A stretch of DNA of 64,000 nt from Adineta vaga (GCA_021613535.1 CP075497.1:13268001-13332000), one strand, 5' to 3'; numbered from the stretch's first letter, positions 23,972 through 32,752 are shown. The notes: generated by a model from the sequence alone, not told the origin. Translations and numbers: made by a program.

Positions 23972-26900
23972 ATGACACAAGTTACTACGTCAACTTTATT
24001 GTTGTCACCATTCAATGGTAAAACAATTGTACTCGAATTTGGTTGTGAAATTGATTTCAAAGCTAAACGAGAATTAATCAAGTATTTACGAGAACAACAA
24101 GCACATATTTCATATATTTTGACAGCCGGTGTATGTTTTCGTTTTATTTTATCAAACAAACTGTTTAAGATTAACTTTCTTTTAGACTGATTATGTTTTA
24201 ACTACGAATAATGTCGATAGTTACAAGATACGTCGTGCCAAACAACTTGGTTTACCAGTAGTCAATGTTGAATATGTATATCAATATCGTTGTTGGTCAT
24301 CAGATAAAACACCGATTGATATGAACAAATTTATTATCAAATCAACTGAAGATCAAGAAAATTTTATAAAAACTGGCACTATTTCTATCGGAGGTATTAT
24401 CAATATCTTTAAAAATTATATAAGATTTCCTTATTCATTAGAATCTCGAGTAAATATGACTAAAATGAATAAATTTGATTTGACTAAAATCAAACGATGG
24501 AATTCAGATGATGTCGATTTGCCTCGTTTCGATGAATTGACACATTGTGAGATTGGTAAATGGGCTATTTTCAAAGTAGATTATTCTATTCATTTCTATT
24601 TCTTATATTTCTACTGTTTATAATACAGGAAAGTAATGATAATTCAAATATATTTTATGTTCTTGAACTTCAAGTTATTCCTGAACAGTATTACGATCAA
24701 ACTACGAGTGATTATCGATTAAGATTTCGTTATGAAAAACAACATGATGAAAAAGTCTTGATACAATACGTATTTAGTGATGATCTAAATGAACAACAAC
24801 AATTATTTGCATTGTATTATTATCGAGTAGCTACAATGTCACGTATAACACGAATTCGTGAGATATTACCTAATCAATTAGGATCAAAATTATTGTTACG
24901 TGTAAGTATATGATATATTGATAGAAACAGAAGAAACTATTTTAAATGATTTTTAGTCTTTATTTATTCATCATCTCGATACACAAATACTTGATGAAAA
25001 TGTATGTCAATTAATTGAATCGATTTGGTTAGAATCAATTGGTGATTTAAATCAAATTTTGAATATATCACTTGAATCGATTACTCTAAAAACAGTATAT
25101 AAACATTTAACTATATTAGTTTGATGTATTCTAAACTATTCAAATAGATTGTTGAAGCTGAAGCTGCACTTCTTGAACTCAAATTGACAAATGATCCTTC
25201 TGCTGCACTTCGTTTCTATTCACTAATACCACATCGATCACAATACATAATTGATTTGATCAAGAATCGTCGTGTATTGATCGAAAAAATCGATTTATGT
25301 CAAGTATGTTTATTTATTTCTTTTTCTTTTGTTTTATTTTTTGTCTATATTTAGATGCTTCGAGATATGCTTACAGTTAATGAACTAACTAATTGGAATT
25401 TAAAAGCACCAATCGAAGCTAAATATCGAGCAATGAAATGTCATATTGAAACAGTAGCTAATTCATCATCTGAATATAAGAATATTGTTAATCTCATTCA
25501 ATCATCGAAAGATAGGTATAAGAAAACTCATTTTCATAATATTAACTTAGTTGTGTTCATTATTAGTGAACAAATTCTTATTCATAATGTATTCAGTGTA
25601 ACTAAACAAACAGATGTACTCAATTTTTCTACAACACTATCCCATCAACAACAATTATTTCATGGATCGAAATATGTTAATTTTCTTGGAATTCTTTCAC
25701 GGTAAAATATTCTTTTTTGTTTTGTAAAATGAAGCTTTATTATTTTATAAGAAAATAAGATAAACATATAACATTACTTTTCGATATATCTAAGTATATG
25801 TGTACATTCAGTGGTTTAGTTATGCCTAAAATGGTCGTAGAAGATCTGGGTGTTGTACGTACAGATGTTGGTTGTCTTGGTTATGGAATTTACTTTTCTG
25901 ATTGTGCTACAACATCTTTAAAATATACGACAGCAAGTACAATACGACCAGGTCGTCGTTTGTTATGCATTTGTCAAGTAGCACTTGGTGAAACAGCAAA
26001 TTATTATTCATTTTCACCAACTCTTATCAAACCTCCTGTTGGTTTTCATAGTACACATGGAATTAAACAAACAGAAGATAATCATTCAATGTTTACTGTA
26101 AGTAATTTGTGATCTGTCAAAGAAAAAATAAAACTTTCAAAAATAGGATAATGAATATGCAATTTATCAACTTGATCAACAACATTTAAGTTACATTGTA
26201 GAAGTTTCATGGGCACCGCATGATGCTTTTAATATCGAATTAGAACGATTACCATTGATTCATCATGAAAAATATTCATTAAAATTGAATGAACATGGTA
26301 ATAACGATTGTTTTTATTAGATTAGAATTCATTTTTTTTTTGTTATATTCTAGTTGAAGTTCCTATAACGATTGATAATGAAGTAATTGAAATAGCTGAA
26401 CAAGATTATGGTTTAATATGTCCATCATCAGGAAAACTTATCCCACTTAAATCATATCATATTCGTGCTCAAATTGTTGATGTTACTGTTGAAGTAATTA
26501 TTTGAAATAAAATTTTAATTTATTATGTTTTTTTTTTTATTTCATAAAAAGGTTGTTCTCTATCAAGTCTATTATAATATGAATTCAACATCGATTGAAG
26601 CTAAATATGTGTTTCCTCTTGATGAAAATTCAATTGTATGTGCTTTTGAAGCACATATTAATAATAAAGTTATTAAAGGTATCGTTAAAGAGAAAGAACA
26701 AGCTAAACGAGAGTATCGAGAAGCAATTGAAAAAGGTCATGGTGCCTATTTAATGCATCAAGAAGAAGCTCAAGTTTTCAGTGTTGCTGTTGGTAATTTA
26801 CCAGCGCATAATGAAGTAATTATTAAGATAACCTATGTCGCTGAATTAGAAATTGAAAATGATGATATTATTTTTCGTCTTCCATCGAAAATGTCTTCGT

Positions 26901-29900: not shown

Positions 29901-32752
29901 ACGGCGAAATAACAGCTCTCTTTCGACGAATCATGATTTACTTATACTTCAAAGATAATTCTAGGTAGTGAAGACGGACGCCTAACAGAATCGGATTTTC
30001 TCAAACTAATTTTGAAATCAGACGGTGAGCAAATGCCAATGCCTATTGATGATGAGAAATTAAACAACAAGAAGAAAGATGAAACTACAGGTAAGATCTC
30101 TATTAGTATCAAGTCCATTTTATTATGTCCATTATAGAATCAGTGTCACCACAACGATCGTCTCAGCAACAACAACAACCAAAACCTGTCTTTCATATAT
30201 CAATGTATGTATTTTCCGAACTCTGTGTTATCTAGTCATTGATGTTCTCTGTTAGGATGTCGGACGATAAACCAATGTTAGATTTGACATTATCATGTGA
30301 CCAACCATCAATAGAATTACCTGAAGGTGCAGCATCCTCATCTTTTATCGATGATCTCAAGGCGACAAGTAAGATCTGAATTTCGACCATTTAGTTTTTA
30401 TGGTAATATCTATGTAATTTGTTGTTTATTTTAGATCTTGAGTTGGCAGCACCATTCAATTCGTCTGACTATGTATGCTGTGAAAAAGAAAGGTAACGTA
30501 ATAGATAGTGGAGGTTCGACTAATCGATCATATATTTATTGTGAAACGCTCATGAAAAAGAATGTTCACAATATGGTTTCTTAATGAGAAGAAATTTGAA
30601 ATCTACATGTGATTTAACTAATATAGCAATGATATTATCAAATTATCTATTCGAACTTGTTATGATATTCATTGAATGAAAAAGAAAACACGGAACTTTG
30701 AGAACTGTTTTAATTAAGAAACAAACATTCATCTGTCGAGATTCATTTTAATTTAGTTTTATAAAAAATCATTAGAAATCTTTGGAAATTTGTTGCAATC
30801 TTTAGTGGAGAATCAGTTCTTTTCACTACCTTTCTTTTTTTTGCAGTGTAATTGATACTTCTGTATTAGCATCTCGTAGTGGTAGGAGCTGTATGCGACC
30901 TCCAGTAGAATCCAAACCGAAGCCAATTGTTAGTAAGTTATATAATCATACAAATTCTTCAATCATTTTGATTGACGATTTGTCAATATAGAAACACCTT
31001 CACAAGTTTTGTTAAAAAGTGGTAAACATGGTAGCACGAAGGTACTTATCATTGAACCACAAAGTTCAAATGATAATACAATGGATTCGATATCTGATAA
31101 AATACATGTGCCAATGAAAAAACGAGATCGAGACCGGAAAGTATGCATATTAACATGACATTGTTGTTTGAAATGTAAACGACTTCTTAGGAGCAACAGA
31201 ATGACGATGATATGAGAAAGTTTACAATTGAAAATGCACACCCAAAATTAAGATCTCGATCACAAATGACGCGTAGTTCAACATCTGAAACATCTGTCTG
31301 TGATCTACTTTGTCTGAATGTATGTCCACTTAGTCTAGGCATCGAAGATATTCACGGTAATATGCACATACTGATTCCTCGTAATACAGTTATTCCAACA
31401 CGAACTGAATTTTATCCAATATTTACAAATGCTTATGCCTATCAAACAACAGCTACTATTCGCATATTCGAAGGTGAACATCATCTCACAAAACACAATG
31501 TACGTAGTGTTTTGATTTCGTAAATTTTATTTTCTAGTCTTCACGATTATAGATACTATTAGGCGAATTTAGTCTTTCTAATCTAACAAGTAACTTTGTT
31601 GCTCAAACACTTGAAATAGCTATTCGTATGAATATTGATGCTAATGGAATACTTCGTGTCGATGCTAAAGAAACGTGTTCGAGTGCGAAAGCTTCATTTA
31701 CTTTTGAATTCAATCAACAAAGTTTGACAATTACTGAGATTTTTCATATCATTACTGAATATCGTTCATATTTATTTAGGATTGAGTAAAAATGATATTG
31801 AACGACATATTACATGTGTAGAAAGTGATACGAATTTTGCAGCTAAACCTGATTATTTTTATTCCATAGTTTATGATCGCAAATCCAATGATCCATTGTA
31901 TTTAGTTTGTATTATGTCATTGTTTCATAGTTCAATATTTCACTTTTTCTATCTTTTCTTAGCTTGGTGGTGAAATTAAAGCTATTACACGTAACTTTTC
32001 TGGTAAACTTATTACCTCATTCGGTAATTTCTCCTTTATTATTGTTTGAGAGATACACTGCGATTGTCTATATACAAATCTAGGTCAAATGAGTGGTATT
32101 CCACTTCTTATTAAAATGACCCATATTCAATCTACAAGTAGAATGATTGAAGAACTCATGAAACTTCAATCTGAAGTAATATCAATTTTAAAAGTTTATT
32201 ATCGATTTGCATTTGATTCAAATATAGGACGGTTCATTTACATTGAATAAAGATTTAGCTGATATACTTCATATCAATGTTGATACTTTCAGTAGTTTAG
32301 AACAATATCTATACGAACAAGGTTTTAAATCGATTGGTAGGATTGTCTGATTCGTTACAGAGACATGAACTTTAATTTTCTTAGCTTTGAACATACAAAA
32401 CGAAATTATTCGTTTAATCGGTACAGGTATCATGCTTCTTTGGCTTGTTCTTCAAATGCAAGTTTTACAACAAAATACGAGTCAATTTTTATTTAATATT
32501 GAACAAATCAAAGTGAATTATTATTTTTCTCGATCTTTTTAATTTTCATTCTACTCTCTCTATGTTACTAAGGCTTATCTCTGGAAAAAATTACCTGCTA
32601 ACATCAGTGAACAAATTAACAAAGCGATCGAATTCTATAAACAAACAAGTCAGCGTCATGGTATCTATTGTAAACAATTAGAATTGATTGATTCATCGTG
32701 GGATATGTTTATTCAACGTATAGTTATCGGCATCGATCATGACAATAACTAA
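23972..32752 (+). CDS. PARP4: PARP4/vault PARP: BRCT - PARP regulatory - PARP catalytic - VIT - vWA - [calmodulin] - [Hsp70 SBD] - MVP-binding domain; about 37 exons
   Basis: BRCT at the N-terminus; regulatory RFYSLIPH; catalytic LFHGS...[15 protein letters not shown]...SLKY...DNEYAIY (H-Y-E); [14 protein letters not shown]...GHGAYLM...VGNLP; v[10 protein letters not shown]...GNTD...LSDG; then [11 protein letters not shown]-terminus LQSEDGSFTL...[13 protein letters not shown] matches the PARP4 C-terminal domain. Splice phases are compatible at every junction I traced; stop TAA at 32750-32752. Confidence 0.9.
29296..30015 (+). other. Calmodulin-like domain inside PARP4 (5 exons)
   Basis: Exons 29296-29392, 29456-29533, 29592-29733, 29785-29863 and 29965 onward give [150 protein letters not shown], with no stop. 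Confidence 0.92.
31299..31812 (+). other. Hsp70 substrate-binding-domain-like segment inside PARP4 (3 exons)
   Basis: [15 protein letters not shown]...[10 protein letters not shown]...[26 protein letters not shown]|ILLGEFSL...[13 protein letters not shown]...[11 protein letters not shown]. This parallels Hsp70 LLLDVxPLSLGIE, IxRNTTIPT, EGER, LLGxF, DANGIL and RLSKEEIER. Confidence 0.88.

Follow-up and report, generated by a model that had tools for sequence, protein, structure and literature searches.

The PARP4 gene and its transcripts

The window is a stretch of 64,000 nucleotides of Adineta vaga DNA. At 23972-32752 its plus strand carries a single open frame of 34 exons (6399 nt, 2132 codons) connected by GT..AG joins, with no stop before the TAA at 32750-32752. 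The whole gene is collinear with the Rotaria socialis model P0168 (2173 aa) from the Met at 23972 to the stop, and its 5' part also joins in frame. The block 27579..29079 ends in phase 0, and the block 29296..32752 begins in phase 0, with 722 codons uninterrupted by a stop. We conclude that the locus is one gene, which encodes an orthologue of PARP4 (vault PARP) some 2130 residues long. A sequence-only reading had proposed one frame running from BRCT, PARP, VIT and vWA domains through a linker, a calmodulin, a spacer and an Hsp70 substrate-binding domain (SBD) to the PARP4 C-terminus. This frame was borne out and the module coordinates were accurate. The multi-exon GT-AG structure also stood, but not the count of about 37 exons, which is 34 in the short form and at most 35 with the optional exon 29136-29201. 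The features are listed in Table 1.

Table 1. Features of the PARP4 gene in the window.
Feature	Position	Strand	Basis
Start codon and N-terminal BRCT-like region, exons 1-2	23972..24575	+	Collinear with P0168 residues 1-167; in-frame GT..AG joins
PARP regulatory (helical) and catalytic ART domain	24629..26297	+	Pfam; H-Y-E motif read from translation
VIT and vWA (ITIH-like region)	26354..28353	+	Pfam; RNA contigs over 27579-28351
Post-vWA linker exons e2-e5	28422-28730, 28791-28887, 28938-28960, 29018-29079	+	End in phase 0; homologous to orthologue models
Optional coding pieces in the 216-nt intron	29080..29201	+	Read from sequence; counterparts in orthologue models
Captured calmodulin, five exons	29296-29392, 29456-29533, 29592-29733, 29785-29864, 29965-30090	+	Pfam EF-hand
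Low-complexity spacer exons	30138-30204, 30256-30368, 30435-30492, 30847-30932, 30992-31140, start of 31191-31499 (to 31265)	+	
Hsp70 interdomain linker, SBD-beta, first lid-helix turn	31266..31904	+	Pfam HSP70; RNA joins
C-terminal exons with a short connector followed by the MINT/MVPID-like helical domain (about 32146-32749) and TAA	31963..32752	+	

Pfam was run exon by exon on the window. The PARP catalytic domain (PF00644) matched in mid-protein at 25355-26109 (E 3.6e-5 and 2.4e-10), and the translation keeps the H-Y-E triad (LFHGS, GIYFSD, DNEYAIY); the PARP_reg match was weak. VIT (9e-32) and VWA (2e-6) were also found, with VIT and the start of vWA at 26519-27406, and the dN/dS values of these two domains were 0.16-0.20. 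Exon 27579-28353 (258 aa) retrieves PARP4 of many animals, such as fish, shrew, Hydra and molluscs. The first exons of the gene gave no Pfam match to BRCT when searched by themselves; they are collinear with orthologue models that bear PF00533, and it is only on orthologue models that the BRCT match was obtained (P0001, E 0.004; precomputed on P0157 and P0158).

A profile (A3) of rotifer C-termini and three window exons was searched against the PDB. It matched human PARP4 residues 1574-1698 with an E value of 3.7e-6, the next match being at 0.63. An AF2 model of an orthologue C-terminus aligned with 9bw6_B at Z 11.4 (rmsd 3.1 A, 124/136 residues). By sequence and predicted fold, the domain that follows the SBD is identified as the PARP4 MINT/MVPID domain, in agreement with the earlier assignment of this part to the PARP4 C-terminus. 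The dN/dS of the MINT exons, 0.17-0.33, indicates purifying selection. In human MINT, the residues contacting the major vault protein (MVP) are S1614, K1618 and R1689 (PMC12280208). In the profile alignment rotifers keep S1614, whereas two of the three contacts differ from the human protein (K1618 to N, R1689 to Q), and the rotifer MINT may dock on MVP via other contacts. The MVP shoulder domain (PF11978) matches several loci of the A. vaga genome (best E 5.9e-51); since MVP genes are present, vaults are plausible in this animal.

Spliced RNA contigs document all joins from 29733|29785 through 32512|32573, including the calmodulin joins 29733|29785, 29864|29965 and 30090|30138, and extend into the 3' UTR to 32836. 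One contig spans about 29629 to 31721 over ten exons and others go on to 32836; all spacer exons, with a 354-nt intron among them, lie within a single contig. Contigs from two studies bridge the modules. The exons of the calmodulin C-lobe, spacer, SBD and MINT share one transcript. The intervals 30090-31191 and 31904-32228, singled out earlier for a transcript check, are thus both bridged by spliced RNA. The view that the modules belong to a single PARP4 gene rather than to adjacent genes holds, because a PARP4 MINT/MVPID domain follows the SBD and RNA joins the calmodulin C-lobe to MINT.

The captured calmodulin and the Hsp70 fragment

EF-hand matches were obtained at 29296-29866. The EF1 and EF2 loops are canonical. 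The other two have degenerated: in EF3 the ligand at position 3 is lost (D to Q) and position 12 is occupied by D, and EF4 carries a 3-residue insertion. The N-lobe is identical to canonical calmodulin at 56/57 residues despite a pS of 0.33-0.74, and the dN/dS of the module is about 0.05-0.10, values which indicate strong purifying selection on the N-lobe. The intact N-lobe would suit a true Ca2+ sensor and a bait equally well.

The captured exons share 85-100% of residues with four canonical calmodulin loci of the same genome. They have the same four intron positions, and the intron after the ATG is placed as in loci L020 and L022. These identical positions argue for capture as genomic exons. 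Unlike the canonical genes, which it resembles in its introns, the captured copy has degenerate EF3 and EF4 and neither its own start nor its own stop. With the calmodulin ATG exon bypassed and its stop codon gone, the upstream PARP4 exon is predicted to splice into calmodulin in phase 0. A free calmodulin gene was considered and rejected, since the module lacks four canonical EF-hand loops in a 149-residue protein and has no start or stop; it is calmodulin-derived. The calmodulin of other species' models ends abruptly within the EF4 loop or directly behind it. In a tree, the window gene grouped with the calmodulin-bearing models of Adineta and Rotaria in a single supported clade (96/94), which places the calmodulin capture before the Adineta/Rotaria split.

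The HSP70 profile matched only over positions 378-515 of 599, at 31191-31786 (E 9e-13 and 3e-5). The fragment consists of the interdomain linker (16 residues) and a complete SBD-beta, gapless against Hsp70 apart from two residues. Orthologue SBDs reach E values of 1e-25 to 1e-27, and the SBD is 46-48% identical to other Hsp70-like SBD matches in the genome. Foldseek matches to Hsp70 SBDs had a probability of about 1.0, for a part of the AF2 model that is of low confidence (pLDDT below 50). In the upstream exons no Pfam match to the Hsp70 ATPase domain was found, and the helical lid (SBD-alpha) and EEVD tail are absent, LSKNDIERH alone remaining before the connector and MINT. Thus the fragment agrees with Hsp70 genes in its interdomain linker and SBD-beta, but, without ATPase domain and lid, it is an SBD without a chaperone cycle. 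Its dN/dS against the paralogues, 0.23-0.26, indicates purifying selection. The Hsp70 fragment is older than the calmodulin capture. The low-complexity spacer gave no Pfam matches; it resembles the spacers of R. sordida P0188 and Silwood1 P0166.

These observations confirm that the A. vaga gene encodes the vault-associated ADP-ribosyltransferase PARP4 with a calmodulin and an Hsp70 peptide-binding domain, both drawn from housekeeping genes, in its variable linker.

PARP4 linkers in paralogues and other species

Public databases hold models with PARP, EF-hands and HSP70 in three Rotaria species and in Adineta steineri, and P0168, P0183, P0188 and P0170 carry PARP, VIT, vWA, EF-hands and HSP70; this orthologue evidence comes from automatic annotation, in which several models are incomplete or cut short. 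Two A. vaga paralogues (contigs C3 and C1) keep the linker, SBD and MINT and are without calmodulin. In both, MINT follows the SBD within single annotated genes (P0173, P0180), and the C3 ohnologue has lost the calmodulin. Both the length and the content of the linker differ widely among paralogues and species, and the spacers flanking the modules diverge much faster than the modules.

An SBD also occurs in oyster PARP4, and a calmodulin in a Mytilus model. In a Pfam scan of 60 PARP4 linkers, 14-3-3 was found in 8, ubiquitin in 6, actin in 4, HSP70 and Ribosomal_60s in 3 each, synaptobrevin in 2, and Ras, kinase and eIF5A in one each. The taxa bearing such modules are oyster, mussel, Heterostelium, Hydra and Branchiostoma. 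Mostly the modules are fragments; examples are an actin piece of about 60 N-terminal residues, the final 45-100 residues of 14-3-3, and ribosomal P-stalk tails of 12 residues. Where several co-occur, the order is 14-3-3, ubiquitin, actin or synaptobrevin, and SBD. Judging from these domain matches, the A. vaga gene exemplifies a wider tendency of PARP4 genes to carry pieces of abundant host proteins in the linker.

The architecture is therefore found elsewhere, in Rotaria and A. steineri, and is not unique to A. vaga. The earlier statement that no description of it was known does not stand: the models are public, the SBD is present in the paralogues and in oyster, and a paper of 2014 (Perina et al., PMC4245714) had already described PARP4-like proteins to which 14-3-3, actin and ubiquitin-related domains are appended. 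In the part of that paper available to us, the appended domains were read as links to signalling, cytoskeleton and ubiquitination, and the same part makes no mention of calmodulin, the Hsp70 SBD, P-stalk tails, synaptobrevin, the fragmentary nature of the modules or their constant order. In mammals, the homologous disordered linker is under positive selection and has been proposed as a host-pathogen interface (PMC4038475).

Possible roles of the modules and comparison with known systems

We give about an even chance to a reading in which this one PARP4 gene, with its captured calmodulin and older Hsp70 fragment, uses the modules as tethered binding baits, a mechanism that we infer. The modules would form tethered binding surfaces beside an active-type ART domain, and the fusion protein would probably be located inside or at the vault via MINT. 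Partners that recognise calmodulin or the Hsp70 SBD, which may be host proteins or pathogen effectors, would be recruited and then ADP-ribosylated or sequestered. The housekeeping pieces in the PARP4 linkers of other eukaryotes make this a testable idea of the role of the enzyme.

More tentatively, and by analogy, the PARP4 linker might be a display array of host-protein mimics, that is, an integrated-decoy system in animals and amoebae. The mimics would possibly comprise calmodulin, the Hsp70 SBD, 14-3-3, ubiquitin, the actin N-terminus, the P-stalk tail, synaptobrevin and Ras. Toxins, effectors and proteases seeking hub proteins would be caught at the vault and then ADP-ribosylated, sequestered or reported. 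Such an array, if true, would account for the positive selection on the mammalian linker and for the long-unknown role of vault PARP. The evidence for it is circumstantial and consists of what the modules are and of that positive selection.

The earlier suggestion of a functional Ca2+ sensor (calmodulin) and a functional binder of unfolded peptides (the SBD), which together would switch PARP4 activity or vault cargo loading in response to calcium and proteotoxic stress (for example desiccation), is rather unlikely. The canonical EF1 and EF2, the conserved N-lobe, the complete SBD-beta under purifying selection and the H-Y-E triad of the ART domain agree with this explanation. It is weakened by the degenerate C-lobe EF-hands of the A. 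vaga copy and by an SBD without ATPase domain or lid. Moreover, calmodulin is cut short around EF4 in other species' models, the C3 ohnologue lost it, and the same linker in other taxa holds fragments unable to sense (actin 1-60, 14-3-3 ends, P-stalk tails).

We consider it improbable that PARP4 proper ends near 29079-29290 and that the 216-nt gap holds the start of a separate gene for calmodulin, SBD and MINT. RNA contigs cover 27579 to about 29079; in this block a 637-nt contig is listed to 28729, and the remaining 181 nt with their joints were deduced from its size and the bin depth. Bin depths in three runs imply that the upstream coverage stops at about 29079, and the join 29079|29296 is absent among the RNA joints listed. 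For the interval 28730-29296, also marked earlier for a transcript check, the contigs thus reach this deduced end and the join itself is missing from those listed. On the calmodulin N-lobe exons no locus-specific RNA was seen, the coverage there coming only from canonical calmodulin contigs (depth about 150, 90-95% alike, highly expressed genes). An ATG at 29098-29100 is followed by GT, and the R. sordida model P0001 ends near here. However, this ATG shares the frame of e5, and orthologue models have a conserved extension, '..KLC(T/I)M', that it matches, and the end of P0001 is an annotation error that reads into the intron after e3. Contigs ending at an exon boundary are expected from alternative splicing in de Bruijn graph assembly, the gap is only 216 nt, and all three alternative splice routes across it keep phase 0. 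Two optional pieces lie there, the e5 extension 29080-29100 (VRKLCIM; donor GT at 29101, phase 0) and the exon 29136-29201 (22 residues; donor GT at 29202, phase 0). They are covered by no RNA contig examined; models from A. steineri (P0170) and Rotaria (P0165/P0166) have the counterparts '..KLCTM' and 'LGEVPDFTGELFMPTT..'. In P0168, P0167 and P0183, models of R. socialis and R. magnacalcarata, the sequence reads '...EQMDK|ADQLTEEQ', which is the join equivalent to 29079|29296. RNA depth is alike on the two sides, about 6 for PARP4 and about 9 for the modules. MINT is itself a PARP4 domain, and it follows the SBD in single annotated genes of both paralogues. Since the 29079|29296 join and locus-specific N-lobe RNA were not seen, a shorter isoform is possible; a calmodulin-SBD-MINT isoform may arise from an internal start.

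That the modules are functionless exonised passengers tolerated in a disordered linker is very improbable: the variable linker and the loss of calmodulin from the C3 copy would fit, but the dN/dS values of both modules, their retention across Adineta and Rotaria and the much faster divergence of the flanking spacers argue against it. An assembly or annotation artefact (a mis-join or chimeric model) is hardly credible, even if fusion artefacts are common in automatic invertebrate annotations according to the available part of PMC12964723, given the chromosome-scale contig, runs of unrecorded library type that hold 70-85% of the stretch's words, the RNA contigs from two studies, and the same order in two A. 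vaga paralogues and five other species.

The encoded protein has the same domain order as human PARP4/vPARP (PDB 9bw6, 9bw7), namely BRCT (in A. vaga a BRCT-like region), PARP with H-Y-E, VIT, vWA, a long linker and MINT/MVPID. The human linker is a disordered Pro-rich exon without recognisable domains, whereas the rotifer linker holds calmodulin and the SBD. PARP4-like module-bearing proteins were recovered in Heterostelium, Branchiostoma, Hydra and molluscs. In the CDPKs of plants and apicomplexans, a calmodulin-derived EF-hand module is fused in cis to an enzyme; all four EF-hands work, adjoining an autoinhibitory junction. In A. vaga, by contrast, the C-lobe is degenerate and the module lies in a disordered linker about 1000 residues from the catalytic domain. 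As far as the available part of their paper describes them, the proteins of Perina et al. 2014 (PMC4245714) are alike in being clade-5 PARPs with VIT and vWA and a housekeeping-protein domain after vWA. Plant NLR-IDs ('integrated decoys') belong to an unrelated protein family, and no PARP4 module is known to bind an effector or to have an immune output; the likeness is one of analogy and not of membership. In both, an otherwise conserved protein has a variable site where host-protein pieces have been gained repeatedly, with lineage-specific gain and loss, and the homologous PARP4 region evolves rapidly in mammals (PMC4038475).

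Structure of the gene and its transcripts

At 23972-32752 on the forward strand, a run of short stop-free segments was found, with introns of 45-68 nt between them. Each stop-free segment was scanned with Pfam separately, and the domains obtained are listed in the table below; database and fold searches for the complete protein used orthologue models in its place, and joined exons served only for checks of phase and stops. All adjacent pairs of segments could be linked in frame without a stop through GT..AG joins; in its short form the gene amounts to 2132 codons (6399 nt) in 34 exons. 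The gene is collinear, from the first Met to the stop, with the 2173-residue Rotaria socialis orthologue model P0168. The coordinates that the sequence-only reading had assigned to a PARP4 gene with calmodulin and Hsp70 modules are accurate. The catalytic H-Y-E motif is legible in the translations (LFHGS, GIYFSD, DNEYAIY), and precomputed annotation places PF26156 and PF26166 on vertebrate and rotifer PARP4. Two introns, 30493-30846 (354 nt) and 25702-25811 (110 nt), far exceed the length that is the norm in this gene; they may contain optional exons, as the 216-nt intron 29080-29295 does.

Features of the PARP4 gene and of the RNA contigs that cover its modules
Feature	Position	Strand	Basis	Remarks
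PARP regulatory and catalytic domain	25148-26109	+	Pfam	
VIT and start of vWA	26519-27406	+	Pfam	VIT, E 9e-32
Extension of exon 29018-29079 (VRKLCIM)	donor at 29101	+		21 nt, phase 0
Optional exon	29136-29201	+		phase 0
EF-hands	29296-29866	+	Pfam	four consecutive exons
HSP70	31191-31786	+	Pfam	only profile positions 378-515, that is, interdomain linker and SBD-beta
Pieces and joints, calmodulin and spacer	29785-29864, 29965-30090, 30138-30204, 30256-30368, 30435-30492, 30847-30932, 30992-31140		X3 record 12	
Pieces and joints, SBD side	31191-31499, 31553-31721		X3 record 12	
Extension toward the C-terminus	31780-31904, 31963-32023, 32084-32175, 32228-32336, 32385-32512, 32573-32836		further contigs	

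The region 27500-33300 was compared with Logan contigs from two studies; the four runs used were guessed to be RNA. Their splicing at GT..AG shows that the contigs are derived from RNA. A contig of 1352 nt (record 12 of run X3) begins at approximately 29629, in the third calmodulin exon, and is continued by further contigs. Since this chain runs from the third calmodulin exon to 32836, the C-lobe of calmodulin, the spacer, the substrate-binding domain of Hsp70 (SBD) and the C-terminal domain are on one transcript. A second group of contigs gives coverage from 27579 on. In this group, record 3 of run X1 (637 nt) is listed as far as 28729, and its end was put near 29079 from the remaining 181 nt and the bin depths, not from listed pieces or joints. 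The joints listed (15 out of a total of 24) do not include 29079|29296, which is evidence neither for nor against this join.

For the N-lobe exons, the four runs gave no contig with the window's own bases. The only contigs covering these exons have a depth of approximately 150, deviate from the window at several sites and carry 255 nt of foreign sequence ahead of 29295; they represent mRNAs transcribed from the canonical calmodulin genes. A search for homologous proteins with region 1-165 of P0168:1229-1460 returned 11 fragments, and none of the five examined reaches calmodulin.

We think it very probable that the modules and the enzyme part of PARP4 are fused in one gene, because of the reading phase, the joins in orthologues, the PARP4 domain at the far end and the gene models of the paralogues. 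The block 27579..29079 finishes on a complete codon, and the block 29296..32752 starts on one and is open for 722 codons. In the 216-nt gap between them lie two pieces of optional coding sequence, each of them in phase 0, and every splice route across it has a counterpart in the gene model of another bdelloid: '...EQMDK|ADQLTEEQ' in the R. socialis and R. magnacalcarata models (P0168, P0167, P0183), '...KIEKLCTM|ADQL' in the A. steineri model, and an additional 'LGEVPDFTGELFMPTT...' in the Rotaria sp. Silwood1 model. The far end of the module transcript encodes the MINT/MVPID domain of PARP4, and in both paralogues (P0173, P0180) SBD and MINT lie within single annotated PARP4 genes. Coverage apparently stops at the exon boundary in three runs, for which alternative splicing there would account; a shorter isoform from an internal start is possible. 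ATG 29098 is unlikely to be the start of an independent gene, being in frame with exon 29018-29079 and matching an exon extension that is conserved in orthologues.

Origin and history of the two modules

The genome has four canonical calmodulin loci, and the four intron positions of the window's calmodulin are common to all of them. Two of these loci (L020 and L022) have an intron straight after the ATG, and the first calmodulin exon of the window is preceded by ...ctag|. The canonical last exon, (D)GQVNYEEFVxMMTSK*, is the counterpart of window exon 29965-30090, in which the stop is lost. Because the canonical intron positions are kept and the intron after the ATG is matched, calmodulin was captured as genomic DNA without its ATG exon, by exon shuffling. 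As a case of exon capture the locus is a clean one: a whole calmodulin gene, lacking just the ATG exon and the stop codon, was spliced into another gene. A retroposed calmodulin is ruled out by the introns retained at canonical positions.

The N-lobe is identical to the canonical genes at 56/57 positions despite pS values of 0.33-0.74, which indicates strong purifying selection on it and rules out recent gene conversion with canonical calmodulin. The C-lobe is changed at Ca2+ ligands: EF3 is altered, and EF4 has three extra residues.

In a tree built on exon 27579-28352, a supported clade (96/94) comprises seven sequences, namely the window gene, A. steineri P0170, four Rotaria models with calmodulin and the contig-3 copy of A. 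vaga, which lacks it. The capture is therefore older than the Adineta-Rotaria split, and the contig-3 ohnologue lost calmodulin. The motif (E/K)DCPWQHVL..LE..DDWNNVDL..LDCMDE.SY.DF is conserved after the calmodulin position in the linkers of the contig-3 paralogue P0173 and of A. steineri P0170, and R. sordida P0153 has a related stretch.

The SBD is older and more widespread in PARP4 than calmodulin. Searches of the genome found three additional SBD copies. On contigs 3 and 1 the SBD belongs to complete PARP4 genes, together with the linker and MINT. The contig 6 copy (C6:12945005-12948226; L003, L010), approximately 350 kb from the window, is truncated to the linker end, the Hsp70 SBD and MINT-like exons; a glutamate-decarboxylase-like gene precedes it on the same strand, and the 12.7 kb upstream of it yielded no PARP, VIT or vWA. 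This copy may be a pseudogene, or it may encode an SBD protein that is targeted to vaults on its own. Between paralogues, dN/dS was 0.23-0.26 for the SBD exons, 0.17-0.33 for the MINT exons and 0.16-0.20 for VIT and vWA. Outside rotifers, an SBD is present at the end of oyster PARP4 (Magallana gigas K1PUC2, Saccostrea).

The C-terminal domain and the role of the modules

An alignment of eight rotifer C-termini and three window exons was used as a profile against the PDB sequences. It matched residues 1574-1698 of full-length human PARP4 with an E of 3.7e-6, the next match having an E of 0.63. This human region is the MINT/MVPID domain (PMC10450202, PMC12280208). In an AF2 model of the R. socialis segment from the SBD to the end, pLDDT is 75-93 for the last 155 residues and <50 for the SBD half, so that the model is used for the C-terminal domain and not for the SBD or its packing against MINT. 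The best fold match among 48,161 PDB representatives was 9bw6_B (Z 11.4, rmsd 3.1 A, 124/136 residues), which is the MINT domain in the human vault.

MVP (major vault protein) genes are present in the A. vaga genome. Among the three human residues that contact MVP, S1614 is kept in rotifers, K1618 is replaced by N and R1689 by Q. Docking of the rotifer MINT domain on MVP is therefore no more than plausible. AlphaFold models of the human MINT-MVP complex are inaccurate according to the authors of the human structure (PMC12280208). The sole other fold match above Z 5 was a domain of a Trypanosoma brucei flagellar doublet-microtubule protein (9e5c chain 4t; Z 9.3, 110 residues), and this match to the rotifer model raises the possibility of a MINT fold in proteins other than PARP4 and VWA5A.

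A single frame combines an active-type ADP-ribosyltransferase domain and an ITIH-like region with two captured modules, both conserved, and the MINT domain. To our knowledge, the role of PARP4 and vaults is still unclear after decades of work. We favor the reading that the captured modules would function as tethered binding modules, because the captured proteins are interaction hubs, many modules are fragments incapable of their native job, and the modules stay close to their parents while the spacers diverge. The earlier idea of a Ca2+ and stress sensor is possible, the chief point for it being the intact N-lobe; however, the C-lobe is degenerate, there is neither an Hsp70 ATPase domain nor a lid, and calmodulin was lost in the ohnologue. 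The partners might be host clients or pathogen effectors; a version of the tethered modules directed at pathogen effectors, by analogy with the logic of integrated decoys, seems rather unlikely. With recognisable modules in the linker, the vague 'specificity interface' becomes a set of concrete, clonable baits: the questions are which partners the tethered calmodulin or SBD has, whether these partners are ADP-ribosylated and whether infection alters this.

Linker modules in the PARP4 family

Exon 27579-28353 was searched against 1.84 billion representatives, and the linkers of 60 long matches were scanned with Pfam. Among these 60 linkers, 14-3-3 was found in 8, ubiquitin in 6, actin in 4, HSP70 and ribosomal P protein in 3 each, synaptobrevin and FG-nucleoporin in 2 each, and Ras, protein kinase and the eIF5A N-domain in 1 each. 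The actin matches cover no more of the profile than approximately its first 50-70 positions. Many of the 14-3-3 pieces comprise the last 45-100 residues; in Heterostelium the domain is almost complete. The P-protein pieces correspond to the acidic tail motif (D/E)xMGFGLF, and tails of this type were found by regular expression in ten more proteins and twice in the A. vaga contig-1 paralogue. The linker of this paralogue (C1 ~10174000-10174700, L011; P0180 ~1440-1540) has the P-stalk tail motifs SDDMGFGLFDD and DDFGFDLFGD and also three PPPPPPPMAAGFFGST repeats.

Several linkers carry arrays: 14-3-3, ubiquitin and synaptobrevin (P0013); ubiquitin, actin and SBD (P0064); actin, P-tail and SBD (oyster P0009). 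Where several modules are present, their order is 14-3-3, ubiquitin, actin or synaptobrevin, SBD. Module-bearing linkers occur in Heterostelium, Hydra, Branchiostoma, Mytilus and oysters, and a Mytilus model of low quality has calmodulin too. In PARP4 models of other taxa (P0013, P0025, P0084, P0101, P0116), the embedded ubiquitin retains its C-terminal LRLRGG, so that ordinary deubiquitinases might sever the enzyme part of these proteins from the part that docks on the vault.

Perina et al. (2014, PMC4245714) described a 14-3-3 domain appended to PARP4-like proteins of amoebae, lancelet, sea urchin and Capsaspora; actin and ubiquitin-related domains are also noted there, and are interpreted as links to signalling, the cytoskeleton and ubiquitination. 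In mammalian PARP4, positive selection is confined to the disordered linker exon, which was proposed to be a host-pathogen interface (Daugherty et al. 2014, PMC4038475). Our literature search found nothing on calmodulin, Hsp70 SBD, P-stalk tails or synaptobrevin in PARP4, on the fragmentary nature or order of the modules, or on a tie between the modules and the fast-evolving linker. The finding is real and well located, and it is supported by RNA over most of its length. The architecture is less unique than had been supposed from the sequence alone, since NCBI and UniRef contain the bdelloid PARP4 models as unnamed 'Poly [ADP-ribose] polymerase' entries, the SBD occurs in the paralogues and in oyster, and 14-3-3, actin and ubiquitin are published.

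The linker is the sole region of PARP4 known for fast evolution in mammals, where nothing recognisable is contained in it; its counterpart in rotifers, molluscs, cnidarians, lancelets and dictyostelids carries parts that can be recognised as coming from abundant hub proteins. To the published list of 14-3-3, actin and ubiquitin, the rotifer gene adds calmodulin and the Hsp70 SBD, and for both of them there is support here from RNA, from their conservation between genera and from purifying selection.
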